Shown: positions 1 to 6,036, counted from the first letter of the stretch. The stretch: DNA of 6,036 nt from IMGVR_UViG_3300028607_000568:1-6036, one strand, 5' to 3'. The notes: generated from the letters alone by a model not told the origin. Translations and numbers: made by a program.

Positions 1-459
1 GAAATTGGACATTTAATATTTGAAAATTCTCGTTGTAAGAAGTTAACGCTTACAGATATACAAGCGCATACAATTTTAGTGCGTGGAAATGCCAGCGATG
101 GTCAAAGTCTGGCCCCTTCACCGGGAACTGCGAGAATGAGGGCCATAGGTGGGGGTCACCAACAGGCTGACGCAATGGTCACATCGGGAGGTACATATGA
201 CCGTATTTGGATACAGGCTCCGACGAGTGGGGTTAACGGAAAAATAGGCACTTTAAGATTATCTAACTTATATACTAAAGGTGGTGACTGTGTGCTGTCA
301 AAAATAAATGTAGGAACTATGGAAATTCTTTTAAATGAAGTTGGAATGGGAAATGGGTTCTCCACTAAAGAATTTACAATCAGTACTACTGTTACGGGGG
401 CTAACATAACTGTCGAAGATAACGTGGAAGTAACGATAGCAGAACCAACAACTAGTTAG
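1..459 (+). CDS. C-terminal part of a beta-strand-rich hypothetical protein (possible beta-helix; possibly virion or surface protein); 5' truncated by the window
   Basis: Frame 1 is open from base 1 (EIGHLIFENSRCKKLTLTDIQAHTILVRGN...), so GTG79 is probably not the start. Ends with tandem stops TAG TAA (457-462). Repeated alternating-hydrophobic units: IGHLIFEN, IGTLRLSNL, VGTMEILLN. Confidence 0.75.
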   Translation, partial: EIGHLIFENSRCKKLTLTDIQAHTILVRGNASDGQSLAPSPGTARMRAIGGGHQQADAMVTSGGTYDRIWIQAPTSGVNGKIGTLRLSNLYTKGGDCVLSKINVGTMEILLNEVGMGNGFSTKEFTISTTVTGANITVEDNVEVTIAEPTTS

Positions 460-472
460 TAAAGGGGAGAGT

Positions 473-1048
473 ATGTTACGAGAGAAATTACCATGGTTTA
501 TTTTAGGTTTTCTTATAGCTTGTCTTATGGTTATTCCATACCATGTAAAAGTAATGGATGACTTTAATAATAAGTATAAAGAACAGTGTCTGATAGTAGA
601 TGTTGTAATATCTGATTCACGCGCAGGGTTACCCATATCTATGTCTGGTGAACAAATGATGTGTGGTTCTAATTGGACGAACTCATTCATATATTTCCCC
701 GGTTTTGACGAGCTAGAAAACCAAGCGTTTGGTTTAATAAGGAGGAGTAGAATGACCTATATAGTTACGTCTACTTGTGTAGATGTATTAGATACAGCGT
801 GTTTAGATGTTTGTCCAGTGGACTGCATTTACTTTGAGGAAGGTGTAGATCGAATGGTGTACATTGCTCCTGATGAATGTATCGACTGTGCGGCCTGTGA
901 ACCAGTTTGTCCAGTTAATTCAATCTTTGATGAAAGGGATGTCCCTAAAGCTGAAGAGGCATATATCCCTCTTAATTATGATTATTTTGAAAAGGATATA
1001 GATGAAGTACGAGCCAGACTAAATGAAATGGTTCCGATAGAAGAATGA
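473..1048 (+). CDS. N-terminally membrane-anchored 93-aa region fused in frame to a ferredoxin (long 191-aa form)
   Basis: SD-like AAGGGGAG at 462-469 precedes ATG473. Basic N-terminus MLREK is followed by hydrophobic LPWFILGFLIACLMVIPY. There is no stop before the ferredoxin Met at 752. Confidence 0.6.
   Translation: MLREKLPWFILGFLIACLMVIPYHVKVMDDFNNKYKEQCLIVDVVISDSRAGLPISMSGEQMMCGSNWTNSFIYFPGFDELENQAFGLIRRSRMTYIVTSTCVDVLDTACLDVCPVDCIYFEEGVDRMVYIAPDECIDCAACEPVCPVNSIFDERDVPKAEEAYIPLNYDYFEKDIDEVRARLNEMVPIEE
739..745 (+). promoter_or_regulatory. Strong Shine-Dalgarno site (AAGGAGG) inside ORF 473-1048, serving the ferredoxin start
   Basis: TAAGGAGGAGTAGAATG: consensus SD at normal spacing from ATG752. 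Confidence 0.85.
752..1048 (+). CDS. fdxA: 7Fe ([3Fe-4S][4Fe-4S]) dicluster ferredoxin, FdxA/Azotobacter FdI type, 98 aa
   Basis: MTYIVTSTC-x7-C-x3-CPVDCI ... PDECIDCAACEPVCP has the C9/C17/C21 and C43xxC46xxC49xxxC53P spacing of 7Fe ferredoxins. The family-typical MTY(V/I) N-terminus begins exactly at ATG752, 6 nt after AAGGAGG. Confidence 0.93.
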   Translation: MTYIVTSTCVDVLDTACLDVCPVDCIYFEEGVDRMVYIAPDECIDCAACEPVCPVNSIFDERDVPKAEEAYIPLNYDYFEKDIDEVRARLNEMVPIEE

Positions 1049-1131
1049 TACTTATAGCTATTATTGCGTTTATGATCTTATTTAGTTTATGGGTAGTTGT
1101 ACCAACATATTTACGAAGGGGGGATAAATGA
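1045..1131 (+). CDS. 28-aa single-pass membrane peptide (MILIAIIAFMILFSLWVVVPTYLRRGDK)
   Basis: Missing from the ORF track. It fills the gap exactly, with ATGA start/stop overlaps at both ends (1045-1048 and 1128-1131). About 19 hydrophobic residues are followed by a basic tail. Confidence 0.7.
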   Translation: MILIAIIAFMILFSLWVVVPTYLRRGDK

Positions 1132-1586
1132 AAAAAATACCGACATGGATTACAGCTATAGGTCATTGGTTTTTGCTTTTTGTTCAATTAAGATTTTTCC
1201 ATAATGATATTGTTGATAATACATTTATTAATGAGTCATTAGTTTTACCCAAAGGAATGAAAAGAATGACCTTAGATAATAAATATTGGGTATGTTCTAA
1301 AGAAACTTTTATGAAGTTAGTTAAATGGGTATGGGTAAGTAAAATGAAGTATGTTGGTGATCGTTATGATTGCGATAATTTTGCCTTTACGTTTAAAGCT
1401 TTGGTAGGATTAATATGGGGTTTGAATAATGTGGGGGTGGTTATTGACACTACCGGAGGTCATGCCTATAATATTATTATCTTTGATGATGGTTCATGGG
1501 AACTTTTTGAGCCACAATCAGGGCGTTTTGTTAAGCCGGGAGAACATAAAATGTATACATTTAAGAGAGGACAGGTGATTTTATAA
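1128..1586 (+). CDS. Putative papain/transglutaminase-like cysteine protease (resembles the Marasmius oreades agglutinin C-terminal domain)
   Basis: Motifs YDCDNFA (C82), GHAYN (H112) and FEPQ (E128) occur in the order of a Cys-His-Glu triad. G-rich SD at 1116-1124. Hydrophobic N-terminal stretch. Confidence 0.7.
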   Translation: MKKIPTWITAIGHWFLLFVQLRFFHNDIVDNTFINESLVLPKGMKRMTLDNKYWVCSKETFMKLVKWVWVSKMKYVGDRYDCDNFAFTFKALVGLIWGLNNVGVVIDTTGGHAYNIIIFDDGSWELFEPQSGRFVKPGEHKMYTFKRGQVIL

Positions 1587-1741
1587 TGTATGGAAGTGAT
1601 GAATGCGATTGTAGTGAACCAGCCAAGGGTTCAGAGGAAGAAGAATGTGTTTGTCTCGATTCAGGAATGTGTGAATGCACTGAGGAATTTTGTGAATGTA
1701 CTTTATGCGAGGGGGTAACAGATGACTACAACTACTCATAA
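1586..1741 (+). CDS. 51-aa acidic Cys-rich, metallothionein-like peptide
   Basis: Missing from the ORF track. MYGSDECDCSEPAKGSEEEECVCLDSGMCECTEEFCECTLCEGVTDDYNYS has 9 Cys (four CxC plus one), 16 D/E and 1 K. TAATG overlap with the upstream stop; SD AGGTGA at 1573-1578. Confidence 0.78.
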   Translation: MYGSDECDCSEPAKGSEEEECVCLDSGMCECTEEFCECTLCEGVTDDYNYS

Positions 1742-1961
1742 AATAATAGTTTATACTTCTATTGGTTGAGGCCCATGCATGGCAACCAAGTCTTGGTTGC
1801 GTAAGAGAGGTTATGAGTTTACTGAGTATAATATATCAGAGAATCAAGAATATGCAGATGAGTTACTTAAAAAGGGTTTTAGAGTAACTCCAGTAGTTAT
1901 GATAGGAGATACACCGATTGTTGGATATAGTCCAACGATGTTAGAAAAAGCATTGGCATAG
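1722..1961 (+). CDS. Glutaredoxin/NrdH-redoxin-like selenoprotein, 79 aa, UGPC active site (TGA 1767-1769 read as Sec)
   Basis: Reads MTTTTHKIIVYTSIG-(TGA)-GPCMATKSWLRKRGYEFTEYNISEN...GFRVTPVVMIGDTPIVGYSPTMLEKALA. The first beta strand (IIVYT), CxxC position, cis-Pro motif (TP) and IVG(Y/F) of the Grx fold are all present. SD GAGGGGGT at 1709-1716 precedes ATG1722. The ORF-track start at 1779 lacks the active site and has no convincing SD. Confidence 0.88.
1779..1802 (+). promoter_or_regulatory. Candidate bacterial-type SECIS hairpin
   Basis: GCAACCAA (1782-1789) pairs perfectly with TTGGTTGC (1793-1800) around the loop GTC, which starts with G and has 20 nt between it and the UGA. The stem can extend via U1780-G1801 and A1779-U1802 with G1781 bulged. 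Confidence 0.72.
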
Positions 1962-1970
1962 GAGAAGTGA

Positions 1971-2414
1971 ATGGTTATTGGAAATATGTTGAGAGACAGG
2001 GAAGTTCAGTATACAGCGGTACGAGATGAGACAACAAATACGTGGAGAATATTAGATACGTGGCATGATGCATTACGAAAATTAGACCCAGACGATGATA
2101 TACCTGATGATAATGAAGCGGTAAAAATTTTAACTGAGGGTGAATTTATTTCTTTGATGAAAGAAGCTGCACGGTTAGGAGTCTTGGCTAATGCAACATT
2201 CGGAACAGGAGAAGCGGAGCATGAAGCAACAATCTTAACTAAGGATCAAGAGATTCAACAGCTACATGAACAAATTTTAATGTTACAAGAAGAAAAATCA
2301 CAAGTGATTCAAGATGTATCACATTCCGAAGAATATGAATTGAAGGAAAGAGCGATGGATTCAATTCTAAAATTAGTATCCATGCAAGACATGACTAATT
2401 TAGGTAGGGATTAA
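1971..2414 (+). CDS. Hypothetical acidic protein with a C-terminal coiled coil, immediately upstream of the portal
   Basis: 147-aa ORF with SD AGGAG at 1960-1964. Heptad-like segment KDQEIQQLHEQILMLQEEKSQV. No family recognised. Confidence 0.8.
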   Translation: MVIGNMLRDREVQYTAVRDETTNTWRILDTWHDALRKLDPDDDIPDDNEAVKILTEGEFISLMKEAARLGVLANATFGTGEAEHEATILTKDQEIQQLHEQILMLQEEKSQVIQDVSHSEEYELKERAMDSILKLVSMQDMTNLGRD

Positions 2415-2417
2415 TAT

Positions 2418-4391
2418 ATGAAACTATCAGAATATTTACCAGATGTGCCAGTATTAGCACAACAAATGACTAGTTTGAATAATCAGATTGATCTGATGCA
2501 GTTGATGAAAGCAAGTGGGGGGGCAGAGACAGCTTCTGCGCCTATGATTGGATTAGATCATGTAGTTAATACATGGGTTCGCCATCAAATGGCATATAGG
2601 CAACAACTAGTACAAGATTTACAAACAATCTGTATGTCAGTACAGGAAATACGTTCCCCATTAAATCACATTACGTCGGAAGTATTTCGGAGAGGCTTGG
2701 TATGGGAAGCTAAGACTGATGATCCAGATACCGAAACAAAAGAAACGTTAGAAAAGTTCATGAAAAATTGTAATTCTTTCTCCCAAAGTTTGGAAGAAGT
2801 ACTAAGACAATTCCATTTTGATTTAAATTCAATTGATGATGCGTTCTTATATTTGGCTAAGGAGTATTATAGTGATGGTGAAACATTGCGCTCTAAAGTT
2901 AAAGAAATCAGACGGCTTAATCCAGCCTTGGTCGAGTTCGATCTTGATCAGGCTGGCTTACCTAAGAACTCGCATTTTATATGCCCACTCCATAGAGAAG
3001 AAGTCAATGAAGCACCGGGAGGTTGCCAAGACCCCGATTGCAAACGGGAATTGCAACCCGTTATGTACAAATACTACCATAGGAACCAGCATGTCTACTT
3101 GTTGGAACATGAAGTTATCCACGTTTCTAAGTTTTCCCCTTCGGAAACTTATGGTTGGAGTCCAATACTTACGGTTTTTGAAAAAGGATTAACGCTTATA
3201 GGAATGGATAAAAATCTTTATAGGTATTTCTTTGAACGAAAAATGCCTGCATCAATGATTATGGTCACTACAGATGATCCAGAAAGTCTTAGACGTGAAC
3301 GTGAACATATTGCTGCACAGACTAAGATTGATCCCAATTTTATTCCTATGGTTGCTGTATCAGCCCGTAGTCAACGAGGTCGCGTAGACCTTGTGCGTCT
3401 TTTTCATACATTACAAGAGATGGATTATCTTCCAGTTAGGGAAGAGATACGTGAACGAATTGCAGCTATGTGGGGAGTTACTCCCGCATGGCAAGGCGCA
3501 CCAGAAGCATTTGGGGGGCTTTCTACACAAACACAGCAATTAGTTGTAATGAGTCGAGTAGTCGAGTCTGATCAACGCCTTATACAACAGAAAATTATTC
3601 CTGCTATTTTAGAAGCTTTTGGTGTTGATGATTGGGACTTGAAGTTGCCAAATCCAGAGGAGAAGGCAGAGGCCACTAAGGTTAGTTTCTTACAGCAACG
3701 AGCGCAGATAATGCAAACGATGGCACAACTTGGTTTTATGTTTACATTAAAAGAAGAAGGGGTTGCTATGCAAGACGCTGAATTCGTTATTTCTGGTGAA
3801 ATGGTTCCGAATGCTCAAATGCAAGCGGAACAACAAGCTATGCAATTAGCCCAACAAGAACAGCAATTCAAGATGCAAGAACAACAACAGCAGATGCAAG
3901 AACAACAAATGGGAGCCGCTACTGGTGGTGGTGAAGAACTACCCGCTGGCCCTGAAGGTGGGGCCATCCAAGCAATGCTTAAAGCTGAAGGGAAATTTAA
4001 TGGGCGCACTGGTGGAAGAACTCCTGATTGGCAGGACAAAGCCCCGAACGAAGAACGGGACATTGATGAATATGCAGAAGCACGAGCGCATAAAGCAGAG
4101 AATAGAAATTGGGGTATTAAAGATATTGGAGGAGGTCATCCCATCAATAAGACATGGATGGGAGATTTAATGCAGAAAGGTTTTACGAGTCCTGTAATTA
4201 AAGAAGTAAATTCAGATGGGTCTAAACTTTGGTTTTTACAGAATGGCATAGACTTTGTTGCTGATTTAGGGCCAGCCGGTGTTTTAAGTATTGAGAAAGC
4301 AACCTTTTCAAATGCTATTCCGCAACATTCTAAGACTCCTATGGACACTACACCCTCTACAATAGATATAACTGATGAGGATGATAGTTAA
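2418..4391 (+). CDS. Phage portal protein, HK97-family-like, with a putative Zn-binding insertion and a long Q-rich C-terminal extension
   Basis: Portal-like motifs appear in the expected order: DLNSIDDAFLY; KEIRRLNPALV; EVIHVSKFSPSETYGWSPI; YFFERKMPASMI; EMDYLPVREEIRERIAAMWGVTP (compare D/E-M-x-F...IARAFGVPP); QQKIIPAIL. Confidence 0.85.
   Translation: MKLSEYLPDVPVLAQQMTSLNNQIDLMQLMKASGGAETASAPMIGLDHVVNTWVRHQMAYRQQLVQDLQTICMSVQEIRSPLNHITSEVFRRGLVWEAKTDDPDTETKETLEKFMKNCNSFSQSLEEVLRQFHFDLNSIDDAFLYLAKEYYSDGETLRSKVKEIRRLNPALVEFDLDQAGLPKNSHFICPLHREEVNEAPGGCQDPDCKRELQPVMYKYYHRNQHVYLLEHEVIHVSKFSPSETYGWSPILTVFEKGLTLIGMDKNLYRYFFERKMPASMIMVTTDDPESLRREREHIAAQTKIDPNFIPMVAVSARSQRGRVDLVRLFHTLQEMDYLPVREEIRERIAAMWGVTPAWQGAPEAFGGLSTQTQQLVVMSRVVESDQRLIQQKIIPAILEAFGVDDWDLKLPNPEEKAEATKVSFLQQRAQIMQTMAQLGFMFTLKEEGVAMQDAEFVISGEMVPNAQMQAEQQAMQLAQQEQQFKMQEQQQQMQEQQMGAATGGGEELPAGPEGGAIQAMLKAEGKFNGRTGGRTPDWQDKAPNEERDIDEYAEARAHKAENRNWGIKDIGGGHPINKTWMGDLMQKGFTSPVIKEVNSDGSKLWFLQNGIDFVADLGPAGVLSIEKATFSNAIPQHSKTPMDTTPSTIDITDEDDS
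3816..3911 (+). repeat. Gln-rich low-complexity coding tract with a 17-nt direct repeat at 21-nt period
   Basis: Encodes QMQAEQQAMQLAQQEQQFKMQEQQQQMQEQQM. AGATGCAAGAACAACAA occurs at 3871-3887 and 3892-3908. Confidence 0.85.
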
Positions 4392-6036
4392 TGCCCATCC
4401 GTCAAGCAAAAGGTAAATGGTATTGGGGAACTCAAGGGCCATTCGATTCTAAAAAGAAGGCTCAAGAGGTGGCTAGGGCCGCGCATTCATCTGGGTATAC
4501 TAAAAAATCATCGGATAAAGCAGCACCGGGAAGTAGACCCATGGAGAATCCTTCTTCCATTACAGCAGACGAATTGAATCGAAAATTGCGTAGAGCAACT
4601 AGAGGAGGTAAAGAATTAAAAGAAATACTTCTAAAATATGGGGTACAGGATTTTGGTAACTCACAAGAAGATGCATTAAAACGTGGGGCCAATCAACCTA
4701 AAGGGTGGAAACGCAACAATGCTAATGATGATGAAACTTCAATGGATAAATTTAGGACTTTCGTTAAATTTGACCAACAACGTAGTACCAATCATCCAGC
4801 TTATCCTAGTACTTTTCAAGGTAAATTAGGCGTGAAACGTATTGATTGGAGAAAAAAGAAAGACCCCAATTTTGAAAAACATACTCGTGTTGGAACACCA
4901 ACGGATTCTGTCTATCAAACGTCTATGGACACAGCCATTTTTATGAAAGAGTTGTGGCTCCAAAAGTTTATGGATATATCTAGACAACGTGTTATTGCGT
5001 ATATATTAAAGGAAGCTGAAGAAGAGGAACCGAAAGAAGAAAAACCTCCAAAAGGGGAAGAGCCTACAGAATTGGATGCGGATACTCCAACCGAAGAACC
5101 TACAGATAAACCTACTCCAGTCGTAGATAAACCTGTTACTGTAGCCGGGGCTTTACAGTGGGATACAGCTACGATGGGGCCAATGCCAGAGACTCGTATT
5201 GAAATCAATGATCCTGATGATGCTCCAAAAGGAACCCGTCTTATTGAAGGGCCACGGGAAGGACTCTATTATGATGGTGCTGCAAGTGATGGTGCGCAAA
5301 TTGAAGACCATATTTATTCAGATGAGTTTGATCGCCTTCGCAAACAAATACGTTGGGAAGCTGAACAACAATTAGAGGAAGGTGGGGTAGGGTCTTTAAG
5401 TGATGCTCACGAAACGTACAACAATATGGAAATATCCTATTCAAAATATATCCTAGATGAAATTAGTAAAATTAATCCAAATGTTGTTGATGAACATGAA
5501 GGACATTTAGTTCCGATAGATGTAGATGCTTTTACTGAAATTAATAAAAACGATCTTCGTCAACGCCCAGAGATGCAACGTCTCGCCCTAGACTATGCTG
5601 ATGCACATGATGCTTTAGTAGCTGCGAGAAAGCGTCTTGAGCCAATGCAAGCTGAAGCAATAAATGCTTTGTTAAAAGTTTTTGGTCAGTTGTCCCAACC
5701 ACAAATTGGAAGTCCGGATATTGATAAAGACTCTTCTTATGAAGTAGGTATATCTCCTGATGTTACACTAATGGTAGATAATGATGGATTATATGGTCAC
5801 TGGTTAGAAACTATGCACAAACGGCAAACCATACTTAAATTCTTAGATGAGGTAAATGTTAATGCCACAAATAATTTATCTCCTGAGCAACAGATCGAAA
5901 TGCGGAAACGGGTTATTAATACTGAAATGATTGCTATTAGGGGCAAAAATACCGGGGCATCTTATTTAGGTAAAAAAGGGGGGGATATTCAAAACCGTCT
6001 ATTTGGCGGTTCTGATTTTAGAAACAATACTGTTTT
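4391..6036 (+). CDS. Large modular hypothetical protein (at least 548 aa, 3' truncated), probably head-associated
   Basis: Missing from the ORF track because it has no stop in the window. TAATG overlap with the portal stop; SD GAGG at 4377-4380. My manual translation (MPIRQAKGKWYWGTQGPFDSKKKAQEVARAAHSSGY...GGSDFRNNTV) found no in-frame stop. Basic N-terminal part, E/P/T-rich linker, then an acidic helical region. Confidence 0.85.
   Translation, partial: MPIRQAKGKWYWGTQGPFDSKKKAQEVARAAHSSGYTKKSSDKAAPGSRPMENPSSITADELNRKLRRATRGGKELKEILLKYGVQDFGNSQEDALKRGANQPKGWKRNNANDDETSMDKFRTFVKFDQQRSTNHPAYPSTFQGKLGVKRIDWRKKKDPNFEKHTRVGTPTDSVYQTSMDTAIFMKELWLQKFMDISRQRVIAYILKEAEEEEPKEEKPPKGEEPTELDADTPTEEPTDKPTPVVDKPVTVAGALQWDTATMGPMPETRIEINDPDDAPKGTRLIEGPREGLYYDGAASDGAQIEDHIYSDEFDRLRKQIRWEAEQQLEEGGVGSLSDAHETYNNMEISYSKYILDEISKINPNVVDEHEGHLVPIDVDAFTEINKNDLRQRPEMQRLALDYADAHDALVAARKRLEPMQAEAINALLKVFGQLSQPQIGSPDIDKDSSYEVGISPDVTLMVDNDGLYGHWLETMHKRQTILKFLDEVNVNATNNLSPEQQIEMRKRVINTEMIAIRGKNTGASYLGKKGGDIQNRLFGGSDFRNNTV

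Follow-up and report, generated by a model that had tools for sequence, protein, structure and literature searches.

The window analysed here is the whole 6036-base IMG/VR record IMGVR_UViG_3300028607_000568 (positions 1-6036; CheckV completeness 8%). Between positions 473 and 1961 it carries what we read, with a probability of roughly three in four, as an accessory-gene hotspot of a tailed phage: one of the genes encodes a small redoxin that would serve as the hydrogen donor of a class II ribonucleotide reductase (RNR), NrdJ, by means of a selenocysteine (Sec) decoded by the host, and the other genes are passengers. All credible genes of the window lie on the plus strand, to which all coordinates given below refer, and the segment 473-2414 comprises seven co-oriented open reading frames (ORFs). 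An initial annotation had proposed that this segment is a late-expressed redox/metal cassette for virion assembly, with a simple accumulation of auxiliary genes as the fallback. It is the fallback that matches the gene order in relatives; the cassette idea resolves to an ordinary phage accessory-gene hotspot, and the redoxin within it matters more. The window is part of a marine tailed phage, uncultured and about 70-85 kb in size, which has an SU10-type capsid protein and a GC content of about 37% and most likely infects a bacterium. For comparison, 406 relatives of the portal protein were found in IMG/VR and 80 portal-anchored loci were fetched, with which the window proteins were compared by local tblastn. 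The wider synteny set consisted of 84 distinct related loci, and longer relatives were annotated separately; loci and genomes are cited below by L and G numbers, respectively.

The redoxin gene (1722-1961) encodes a glutaredoxin-fold, NrdH-like protein of 79 amino acids with the active site U-G-P-C. It contains an in-frame UGA (1767-1769) at the first position of the CxxC motif, which the comparative evidence suggests is read as Sec; with the TGA read through, the product matches PF00462 with 51.3 bits against a cut-off of 22.9. On the same comparative evidence a code with TGA as Sec was applied to this gene, and to this gene only. The designation as a Sec-redoxin in the initial annotation is strongly supported by comparison with relatives, and the gene is a candidate selenoprotein gene with its own bacterial-type insertion hairpin. 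Among phages of this and other groups, 26 distinct sequences with 39-93% protein identity have TGA at this position, and TGT or TGC stands there in the homologues of L027-29, L064-65, L075, L131 and L135-138. In most lineages the attacking cysteine thereby appears to have been replaced by Sec. The 14 codons upstream of the TGA encode the conserved first β-strand of glutaredoxins (I/V-x-V/I-Y/F-T-S-x-G) with synonymous third-position changes, the rest of the fold lies downstream of the UGA, and the reading frame is conserved on both sides.

The TGA might instead be an ordinary stop codon, the gene being a pseudogene or giving a 60-amino acid product from the ATG at 1779, or the codon might be reassigned or leaky in the host. 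Such a reading would agree with the prediction of ORFs of 54-61 amino acids by gene callers, with the lack of Sec machinery in the phages, and with the lack of a match to any Rfam family of selenocysteine insertion sequences (SECIS). Nevertheless we consider it very unlikely, since the 14 upstream codons are kept as a β-strand, a product initiated after the UGA would lack the active-site nucleophile, the same codon specifies Cys in homologues, and the hairpin described below is preserved by constraint on synonymous sites. Furthermore, several Sec forms possess no Met after the GPC motif (e.g. GPCQVTK and GPCKVTK), so initiation further downstream could not serve as a general explanation. Elsewhere in these phages TGA acts as a regular stop codon: it ends two genes of the window and accounts for 7-20% of the stops of long ORFs in four relatives, and no in-frame TGA was found inside the portal gene or the last ORF of the window (g9), nor inside the genes for the large terminase subunit (terL), NrdJ or the major capsid protein (MCP) of relatives. 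A global reassignment of TGA (codes 4 or 25) was rejected on these grounds. Public protein sets hold the redoxin family almost only as the shortened ORFs of 54-61 amino acids. A crude read-through scan of four genomes for other selenoprotein candidates yielded noise only, apart from the redoxin.

The putative SECIS hairpin (1782-1800) has an 8-bp stem, in which 1782-1789 pair with 1793-1800, and a GUC loop (1790-1792), and it starts 12 nt after the UGA. It has a calculated minimum free energy (MFE) of -10.6 kcal/mol, a stability that only 0.4% of synonymous recodings reach. The hairpin is kept in 26/26 Sec forms in three sequence versions, with stems of 6-8 bp located 12-16 nt after the UGA. 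In a codon alignment of 14 Sec forms 89% of the cells pair, as compared to 11-47% in slid controls, and two pairs show double changes. Alignment of 23 distinct Sec forms on the hairpin revealed five consecutive central pairs that form in all 23 sequences, four of them with 2-4 pair types, and a G as first loop base in every one. The second and third clades have a hairpin of another sequence, shifted by one codon (CGAAAGC-GUG-GCUUUCG), including a compensatory variant with U...A at the base. The Cys-form clade has the identical peptide MATKSWL, encoded by codons (ACG AAA) that destroy the stem. Since the distant Cys forms are rich in GC, an MFE test could not tell Sec from Cys forms, and position and covariation of the hairpin were used for this purpose. 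Bacterial SECIS elements are poorly conserved in sequence, and their paradigm is that of E. coli fdhF; the spacing, stem length and G(U) loop of the redoxin hairpin match this element, and by these features the hairpin fits a bacterial SECIS. Two side observations concern the same region. Loci L116-L119 (G007, 95.6 kb, 44.6% GC) and L124-L129, which belong to other phage groups, carry a Sec redoxin with the hairpin C/UGAAA/GGC-GUG-GCUUUCG/A. Additionally, the Cys forms of L131 (4025-4065) and L075 (2747-2787) have a different 6-bp hairpin (AGCUAC...GUGGCU) without the loop G at the SECIS position; either a SECIS was once present there and has left this trace, or the hairpin is due to chance.

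In the proposed mechanism, the UGA at 1767-1769 would be decoded by SelB and tRNA-Sec of the host, recruited by the hairpin that lies inside the ORF 12 nt downstream. As no Sec machinery was found in the phages, Sec insertion would depend on a Sec-competent bacterial host. Weak matches to the tRNA-Sec model RF01852 turned out to be tRNA-Tyr: G008:C1:20763-20850 and G007:C1:10243-10330 are 88-nt tRNA-Tyr(GUA) genes of the bacterial type with a long variable arm, scoring 24-26 bits against the tRNA-Sec model. The phages also encode a DnaB-type helicase and a Toprim primase, and Shine-Dalgarno motifs are visible in the sequence. Among deposited phages the portal matches only proteins of Haloarcula viruses (27-30% identity); an archaeal host, suggested by these matches, was rejected in view of the long-arm tRNA-Tyr, the DnaB and Toprim proteins, the Shine-Dalgarno motifs and the position of the SECIS. 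Other leads to a host were discarded as well. A 3.9-kb contig in an Alphaproteobacteria metagenome-assembled genome (MAG) encodes a portal 72% identical to that of the window, and the apparent tRNA-Sec match of this MAG is a tRNA-Ser(UGA), with no SelB domain found in the MAG. Loci L090 and L091 (about 110 kb), assigned to Daviesbacteria and Woesearchaeota MAGs, are probably mis-binned phages and give no evidence on the host; their portals are 57% identical to that of the window over residues 1-461, and they probably come from groundwater or other habitats. An actinobacterial host was considered on account of WhiB, of which no gene was found. The nearest cellular homologues of the ferredoxin described below are 77-78% identical and lie on Mb-scale contigs, one of them named Chloroflexota; with a GC content of 63% against 38% for the phage, and given the high conservation of FdxA, they are a weak lead only.

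The gene neighbourhood of the redoxin suggests its role. In relatives the conserved gene order is terL (identified by phrog_38, E 1e-25), nrdJ, zero to seven small genes, p147 and the portal gene, with an SU10-type MCP (PF17236) encoded later. NrdJ is a class II, adenosylcobalamin-dependent RNR (TIGR02504 NrdJ_Z, 640 bits with a cut-off of 400). Wherever a locus reaches that far, NrdJ is encoded 50-2000 nt upstream of the redoxin, and it is the immediate upstream neighbour where nothing is inserted, as in G001, L132/133 and L112-114. On its other side, every redoxin-bearing locus of this portal family has p147 immediately after the redoxin gene. In another phage group (G007), unrelated to this one, the Sec-form gene lies 1.2 kb from nrdJ, and no RNR was found within about 4 kb upstream of the Sec redoxin in L124-129. 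The best family and structure matches of the redoxin are of the NrdH and YruB type, with 59-62 bits for the respective models, which is below their cut-offs, and among solved structures it is related to 7C10 and to E. coli NrdH (1H75). The alignment with 1H75 extends over 70 residues and includes the C-x-x-C and P-V positions; the matching family phrog_22 is classed under nucleotide metabolism. Since the redoxin gene directly follows nrdJ in some relatives, we infer that the protein is probably the hydrogen donor of the reductase, with Sec as the attacking residue. The 79-residue protein would act as the phage's own NrdJ hydrogen donor, comparable to NrdH or T4 NrdC. Two general expectations cited in the initial annotation are borne out by these loci: the redoxin sits with a nucleotide-metabolism gene, the class II RNR being directly upstream in G001 and L132/133, and terL precedes the portal gene in relatives, with nrdJ and the small-gene island between them.

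Several observations weigh against this reading of the redoxin and its surroundings. No tRNA-Sec, selA, selB or selD was found in the phage genomes, so that Sec competence of the host is an assumption, and no SECIS family was found among Rfam matches with E values up to 10. The redoxin scores 58.6 bits against TIGR02194 (cut-off 85.75) and 54.2 bits against NF007657 (cut-off 131), and it shows UGPC and VGYSP rather than the NrdH signatures CVQC and WSGFRP. The gene for NrdJ is not on the 6-kb record of the window itself. About 60% of the relatives have NrdJ and no redoxin, which implies that the phage RNR can work with reductants of the host. Finally, all loci that carry the ferredoxin also carry the Sec form of the redoxin, and some functional link within the island may exist.

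The variability of the interval in front of p147 identifies it as a hotspot. From nrdJ, or from the gene g1 where this follows it, to p147 the 84 distinct loci contain zero to seven small ORFs belonging to 15 families; about 43 of them have at most one such ORF, and the redoxin is absent altogether from about 43. Whenever one of the 80 portal-anchored loci is long enough to include the position directly upstream of the portal gene, p147 is found there. Of the same 80 loci, 25 have the redoxin, which is the most frequent accessory gene, 6-7 the small Cys-rich protein cys51, 4 the ferredoxin with the membrane peptide mem28, and none the peptidase cp152. The genome G001 (71.5 kb, CheckV 100%) has the order terL, nrdJ, Cys-form redoxin, p147, portal, and in G008, an 85-kb genome with direct terminal repeats, and in G009 (82.8 kb) the order is terL, nrdJ, g1, Sec-form redoxin, p147, portal; ferredoxin, mem28, cp152 and cys51 are lacking in all three of these CheckV-complete relatives. 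A mosaic pattern is also apparent in the comparison of the window with its nearest relative L003, to which the identity is 100% for the ferredoxin, 92% for mem28, 66% for cys51, 93% for the redoxin, 73% for p147 and 92% for the portal. The mosaic identities and the variable gene content indicate a recombination hotspot that collects accessory genes. The small genes would be accessory cargo, exchanged one slot at a time when recombination takes place at the borders of genes. The ferredoxin, the two small membrane proteins that accompany it, the peptidase and the Cys-rich peptide would be sporadic passengers with roles suggested by their families alone. As a further observation on this interval, L049, L052 and L056 have a gap of about 460 nt between nrdJ and p147 that contains no plus-strand ORF of at least 25 amino acids; elsewhere there is either an island or nothing.

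The upstream border of the island is formed by g1, of which the window contains the C-terminal part (1-459, 152 amino acids). This part is 62-100% identical to full-length homologues of 420-470 amino acids in relatives, where the gene lies between nrdJ and that of the redoxin in G004, G008 and G009 and elsewhere in G001; no match in Pfam, PHROG or NCBIfam was found. The C-terminal part of g1 and the ferredoxin are 95-100% identical at the protein level in L047, L051, L107 and L108, loci whose portals are only 61-64% identical to that of the window. Such identities indicate that the block which contains both (1-1131 of the window) was recently exchanged laterally between lineages.

The synteny also bears on the cassette proposal, according to which all seven genes make up a single late-expressed module for the control of redox state or metal supply in virion assembly, for example by loading a Zn site of the portal. 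The genes are indeed co-oriented and chained by overlaps, and four of the products depend on thiol, selenol or Fe-S chemistry. The portal site, C189-x2-H192...C203-x4-C208 (2982-3041), looks real: it is conserved in 54/59 distinct relatives, and one subclade (L033, L055, L066, L076 and L077) lacks the His and the two distal Cys all at once, a pattern consistent with a real metal site. In relatives, other small Cys-rich ORFs precede the redoxin too. These are F3, a zinc ribbon (CxC...CxxC) of 35-46 amino acids found in L013, L018, L021, L022, L025, L104 and L115, and F6, a Cys-rich protein of about 50 amino acids found in L051 and L107-L109; F3 and F6 are unrelated ORFs, usually located directly ahead of a Sec-redoxin, and F3 occurs without redoxin in L018 and L019. 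However, gains and losses of the genes occur independently of one another, an outcome that the initial annotation had itself named as refuting its proposal. In most relatives, the three CheckV-complete genomes among them, the same portal with its Zn site is found while ferredoxin, cp152 and cys51 are lacking, so the site is present whether or not the island genes are. In addition, cp152 resides in another region of related genomes, the conserved upstream neighbour of the redoxin is NrdJ and not a structural gene, and tight gene packing is usual in these genomes. We give a dedicated assembly module the least credence of the explanations considered here, and the island genes would not constitute a co-adapted capsid-assembly module. 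What is preserved across the portal clade is the universal pair of p147 and portal and the common pair of redoxin and p147, and in a few loci a trio made up of fdN, ferredoxin and mem28 travels together; co-occurrence and order of the complete cassette are not preserved.

The first ORF of the segment (473-1048, 191 codons) was taken by the initial annotation as a single ferredoxin gene. The family assignment stands, but in relatives there are two genes, one for a membrane protein of 102 amino acids, whose counterpart in the window is the first 93 codons of the ORF, and one for a ferredoxin of 97-98 amino acids. In the window the N-terminal part of the membrane protein, fdN, occupies 473-751 and the ferredoxin of 98 amino acids 752-1048. 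Homologues of fdN in L003, L047, L051 and L108 are 64-70% identical, are in a frame different from that of the ferredoxin, and stop 1-2 nt before its ATG. DNA alignment with relatives, including L003 (191-797), L047, L051 and L108, revealed deletions of 26 and 5 nt (31 nt) in the window near the end of the fdN gene, which brought the membrane-protein gene and the ferredoxin gene into one frame and fused them. The ferredoxin retains its own Shine-Dalgarno sequence (AGGAGG, 740-745) and the ATG at 752.

The ferredoxin matches Pfam Fer4_7 and Fer4 and is of the 7Fe FdxA type. Its best solved relative is Mycobacterium smegmatis FdxA (2V2K, E 1.6e-23), followed by other 7Fe ferredoxins. Residues Cys 9, 17, 21, 43, 46, 49 and 53 align with cluster ligands, all ligand cysteines of 2V2K are conserved, and the sequence fits the ligand pattern of a [3Fe-4S] plus a [4Fe-4S] cluster. 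The scores are below the NCBIfam equivalog cut-offs, with 105 bits against 125 for FdxA_Actino and 83.6 against 135 for FdxA_Protbact. Directly after the ferredoxin gene follows mem28 (1045-1131), encoding a single-pass membrane peptide of 28 amino acids, which is found in the same position with 62-92% identity in L003, L006, L047, L051 and L108; no match to a Pfam or PHROG family was found.

A functional connection has to be considered for the ferredoxin. Electrons could pass from the ferredoxin through a ferredoxin-dependent disulfide or thioredoxin reductase of the host to the Sec-redoxin and on to NrdJ, so that ferredoxin and Sec-form redoxin would be linked in a partial electron-transfer chain. 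Ferredoxin-dependent thioredoxin reductases exist in bacteria, every ferredoxin locus has the Sec form of the redoxin, and the block of g1, fdN, ferredoxin and mem28 is 95-100% identical between portal clades that are 61-64% identical and that both possess the Sec form. On the other hand, the ferredoxin is present in only about 8 of about 37 redoxin-bearing loci, perhaps as a result of two transfer events, no reductase gene accompanies the pair, and G008 and G009 are complete Sec-form genomes without ferredoxin. The chain is therefore an unlikely explanation, although we would not place it as low as an ordinary stop codon in the redoxin gene or an assembly module, and we prefer to regard the ferredoxin as a passenger of the hotspot.

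The gene cp152 (1128-1586) encodes a papain-like cysteine peptidase of the MOA type with 152 amino acids. It matches PF18022 (40.7 bits, E 3e-10) and PF18021 (27.5 bits), both above the cut-off, and residues C82, H112 and E128, which correspond to a Cys-His-Glu triad, are invariant in 29 homologues. An AlphaFold2 model (pLDDT 89.5) gave Foldseek matches to MOA and PSL1a with an E value of 4e-6 and a probability of 1.0. The assignments of the initial annotation to a ferredoxin, a Cys-protease-like protein and a redoxin accordingly agree with the matches to Fer4_7/Fer4, PF18022 and PF00462. Apart from the window, cp152 is absent from all portal-linked loci; its homologues in the same phage group belong to another cluster of small genes, located some 5 kb beyond the MCP gene. 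In L003, L051 and L108 the slot filled by cp152 holds an unrelated gene of 77 amino acids. Members of the family, which comprises 108 clusters, are common in contigs of marine phages. The GC content of cp152 is 32%; mem28 and cp152 (1045-1586) have 31-32%, clearly less than the 35-41% of the flanking genes, which is consistent with foreign origin. The next gene, cys51 (1586-1741), encodes an acidic peptide of 51 amino acids with 10 Cys and has no match among Pfam and PHROG families. Homologues of cys51 were found in no other loci than L002-L006 and L025, and in each of these the gene immediately precedes that of the redoxin.

The junctions of the segment are as tight as the initial annotation had claimed. 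The stop codon of the ferredoxin frame (TGA, 1046-1048) overlaps the ATG of mem28 at 1045 (ATGA), the stop of mem28 (1129-1131) overlaps the ATG of cp152 at 1128 (ATGA), and the last A of the cp152 stop (TAA, 1584-1586) is shared with the ATG of cys51 at 1586 (TAATG). The end of cys51 (1741) and the redoxin ATG at 1722 give an overlap of 20 nt, and gaps of 9 nt (1962-1970) and 3 nt (2415-2417) separate redoxin from p147 and p147 from portal. In four related genomes, gaps of at most 10 nt or overlaps occur at 48-58% of same-strand neighbours; such close spacing is usual for the phage group, and the 7/7 junctions of the window are tighter than average and not exceptional. The island genes share their direction of transcription with the packaging genes and may be co-transcribed. 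A pattern scan found no convincing terminator within 473-2414 and located a perfect σ70 consensus (TTGACA, 17 nt, TATAAT) at 1444-1472 on the plus strand, inside cp152. Thus an internal promoter may exist despite the lack of intergenic room. The consensus lies about 115 nt ahead of cys51 and overlaps codons of the conserved catalytic motif I-D-x-x-G-G-H-A-Y-N; the cp152 homologue in L165 shows an 11/12 match to the promoter consensus and that of L168 none. The presence of the consensus may simply follow from the protein motif, or the site may work as a genuine promoter.

Downstream of the redoxin follow p147 (1971-2414, 147 codons), the portal gene (2418-4391, 657 amino acids) and g9 (4391-6034, at least 548 amino acids), which is open at its 3′ end and lies outside the hotspot. 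The initial annotation did not describe p147, which is the sole universally conserved partner of the portal. It has 14 invariant columns in 36 sequences, and an AlphaFold2 model (pLDDT 75) shows a small α/β N-terminal domain and after it a long helical hairpin. Searches of Pfam, PHROGs, NCBIfam, ESM Atlas, PDB and BFVD returned no match to any family, feature or fold. The portal was identified by phrog_18178 (E 3e-41), together with a match to Pfam Phage_portal (E 1.7e-6) that is below the cut-off. The gene g9 starts in a TAATG overlap and is far more variable than the portal (24-81% identity among relatives); it has no match in Pfam, PHROG and NCBIfam, and its product has an acidic central stretch rich in Pro, Glu and Lys.

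Full-text literature searches revealed no report of a phage-encoded selenoprotein. One paper describes predicted tRNA-Sec genes in huge phages and no selenoprotein. UxxC glutaredoxins and thioredoxins appear among the bacterial selenoproteins in a 2026 review of prokaryotic selenoproteomes (PMC13188914), in which neither phages nor viruses are mentioned. In a marine trace-element survey, 41% of the GOS class II RNR genes were viral, while viral members were scarce or absent in most of the other metalloprotein and selenoprotein families covered. All glutaredoxins found in deposited phage genomes are Cys forms, with at most 46% identity to the redoxin. The family may be the first bacteriophage selenoprotein family to be described: a UGPC redoxin with an intragenic SECIS that hijacks SelB and tRNA-Sec of the host and provides NrdJ with a faster or oxidation-resistant donor, and in which switching between Sec and Cys tracks decoding by the host or selenium supply and so marks host range or niche. 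For this wider proposal we see the chances as evenly balanced. If Sec is inserted, the use of selenium extends to bacteriophages, and viral nucleotide synthesis in the ocean includes a trace-element-dependent step beside the cobalt-dependent NrdJ. The host would then be a bacterium with SelA, SelB, SelC and SelD, which would set a sequence-based limit to the host range of an uncultured phage group. Sister phages with Sec or Cys forms offer a natural experiment on the catalytic value of Sec. Because gene callers shorten members of this family to 54-61 amino acids, such genes are systematically missed in viromes.

Among known systems, the bacterial UxxC glutaredoxin and thioredoxin selenoproteins are the closest parallel to the phage redoxin. 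They share with it the thioredoxin fold, the replacement of the N-terminal active-site Cys by Sec, and the existence of Sec/Cys pairs among homologues. The E. coli fdhF paradigm likewise has an intragenic stem-loop about 11-12 nt after the UGA, with a G (usually GU) in the apical loop. Unlike the bacterial selenoproteins, the redoxin is encoded by phages that lack selA, selB, selC and selD, and it combines a thioredoxin-like UGPC site with an NrdH-like scaffold and linkage to a class II RNR; its hairpin differs from bacterial SECIS elements in having no match to an Rfam SECIS model. Similar to E. coli NrdH (1H75) and T4 NrdC, the protein has a glutaredoxin fold of about 75-80 amino acids, a CxxC-type site and a cis-Pro (TPV), and in relatives it is encoded beside an RNR gene. 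Whereas NrdH partners a class Ib enzyme, the presumed partner of the redoxin is the B12-dependent class II NrdJ and its nucleophile would be Sec; as stated above, it is also below the NCBIfam NrdH cut-off (58.6 versus 85.75 bits) and lacks CVQC and WSGFRP.

The passengers have known counterparts as well. With the 7Fe FdxA proteins, such as M. smegmatis 2V2K and Azotobacter FdI, the ferredoxin shares the pattern C-x7-C-x3-CP ... C-x2-C-x2-C-x3-CP, and the alignment with 2V2K is near full-length; unlike known FdxA it is below the equivalog cut-offs, is phage-borne, and is accompanied by two small membrane proteins, one of which is fused in frame in the window. With the protease domain found in two fungal lectins, MOA and PSL1a, the peptidase cp152 shares the fold (Foldseek TM 0.60, normalised to the query) and the Cys-His-Glu triad, whereas it is a stand-alone protein of 152 amino acids without ricin-type lectin domain, the window copy of which has a hydrophobic N-terminus. 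As a whole, the region resembles the hyperplastic or moron and auxiliary metabolic gene islands of tailed phages, which likewise have a fixed insertion site between conserved genes, slot-wise replacement, mosaic identities of neighbouring genes, a lower GC content in some of the cargo, co-orientation and tight packing. It differs from these in that the site lies between terL/nrdJ and the portal gene, thereby splitting the usual terL-portal pair, and in that the cargo is enriched in small Cys-rich proteins.

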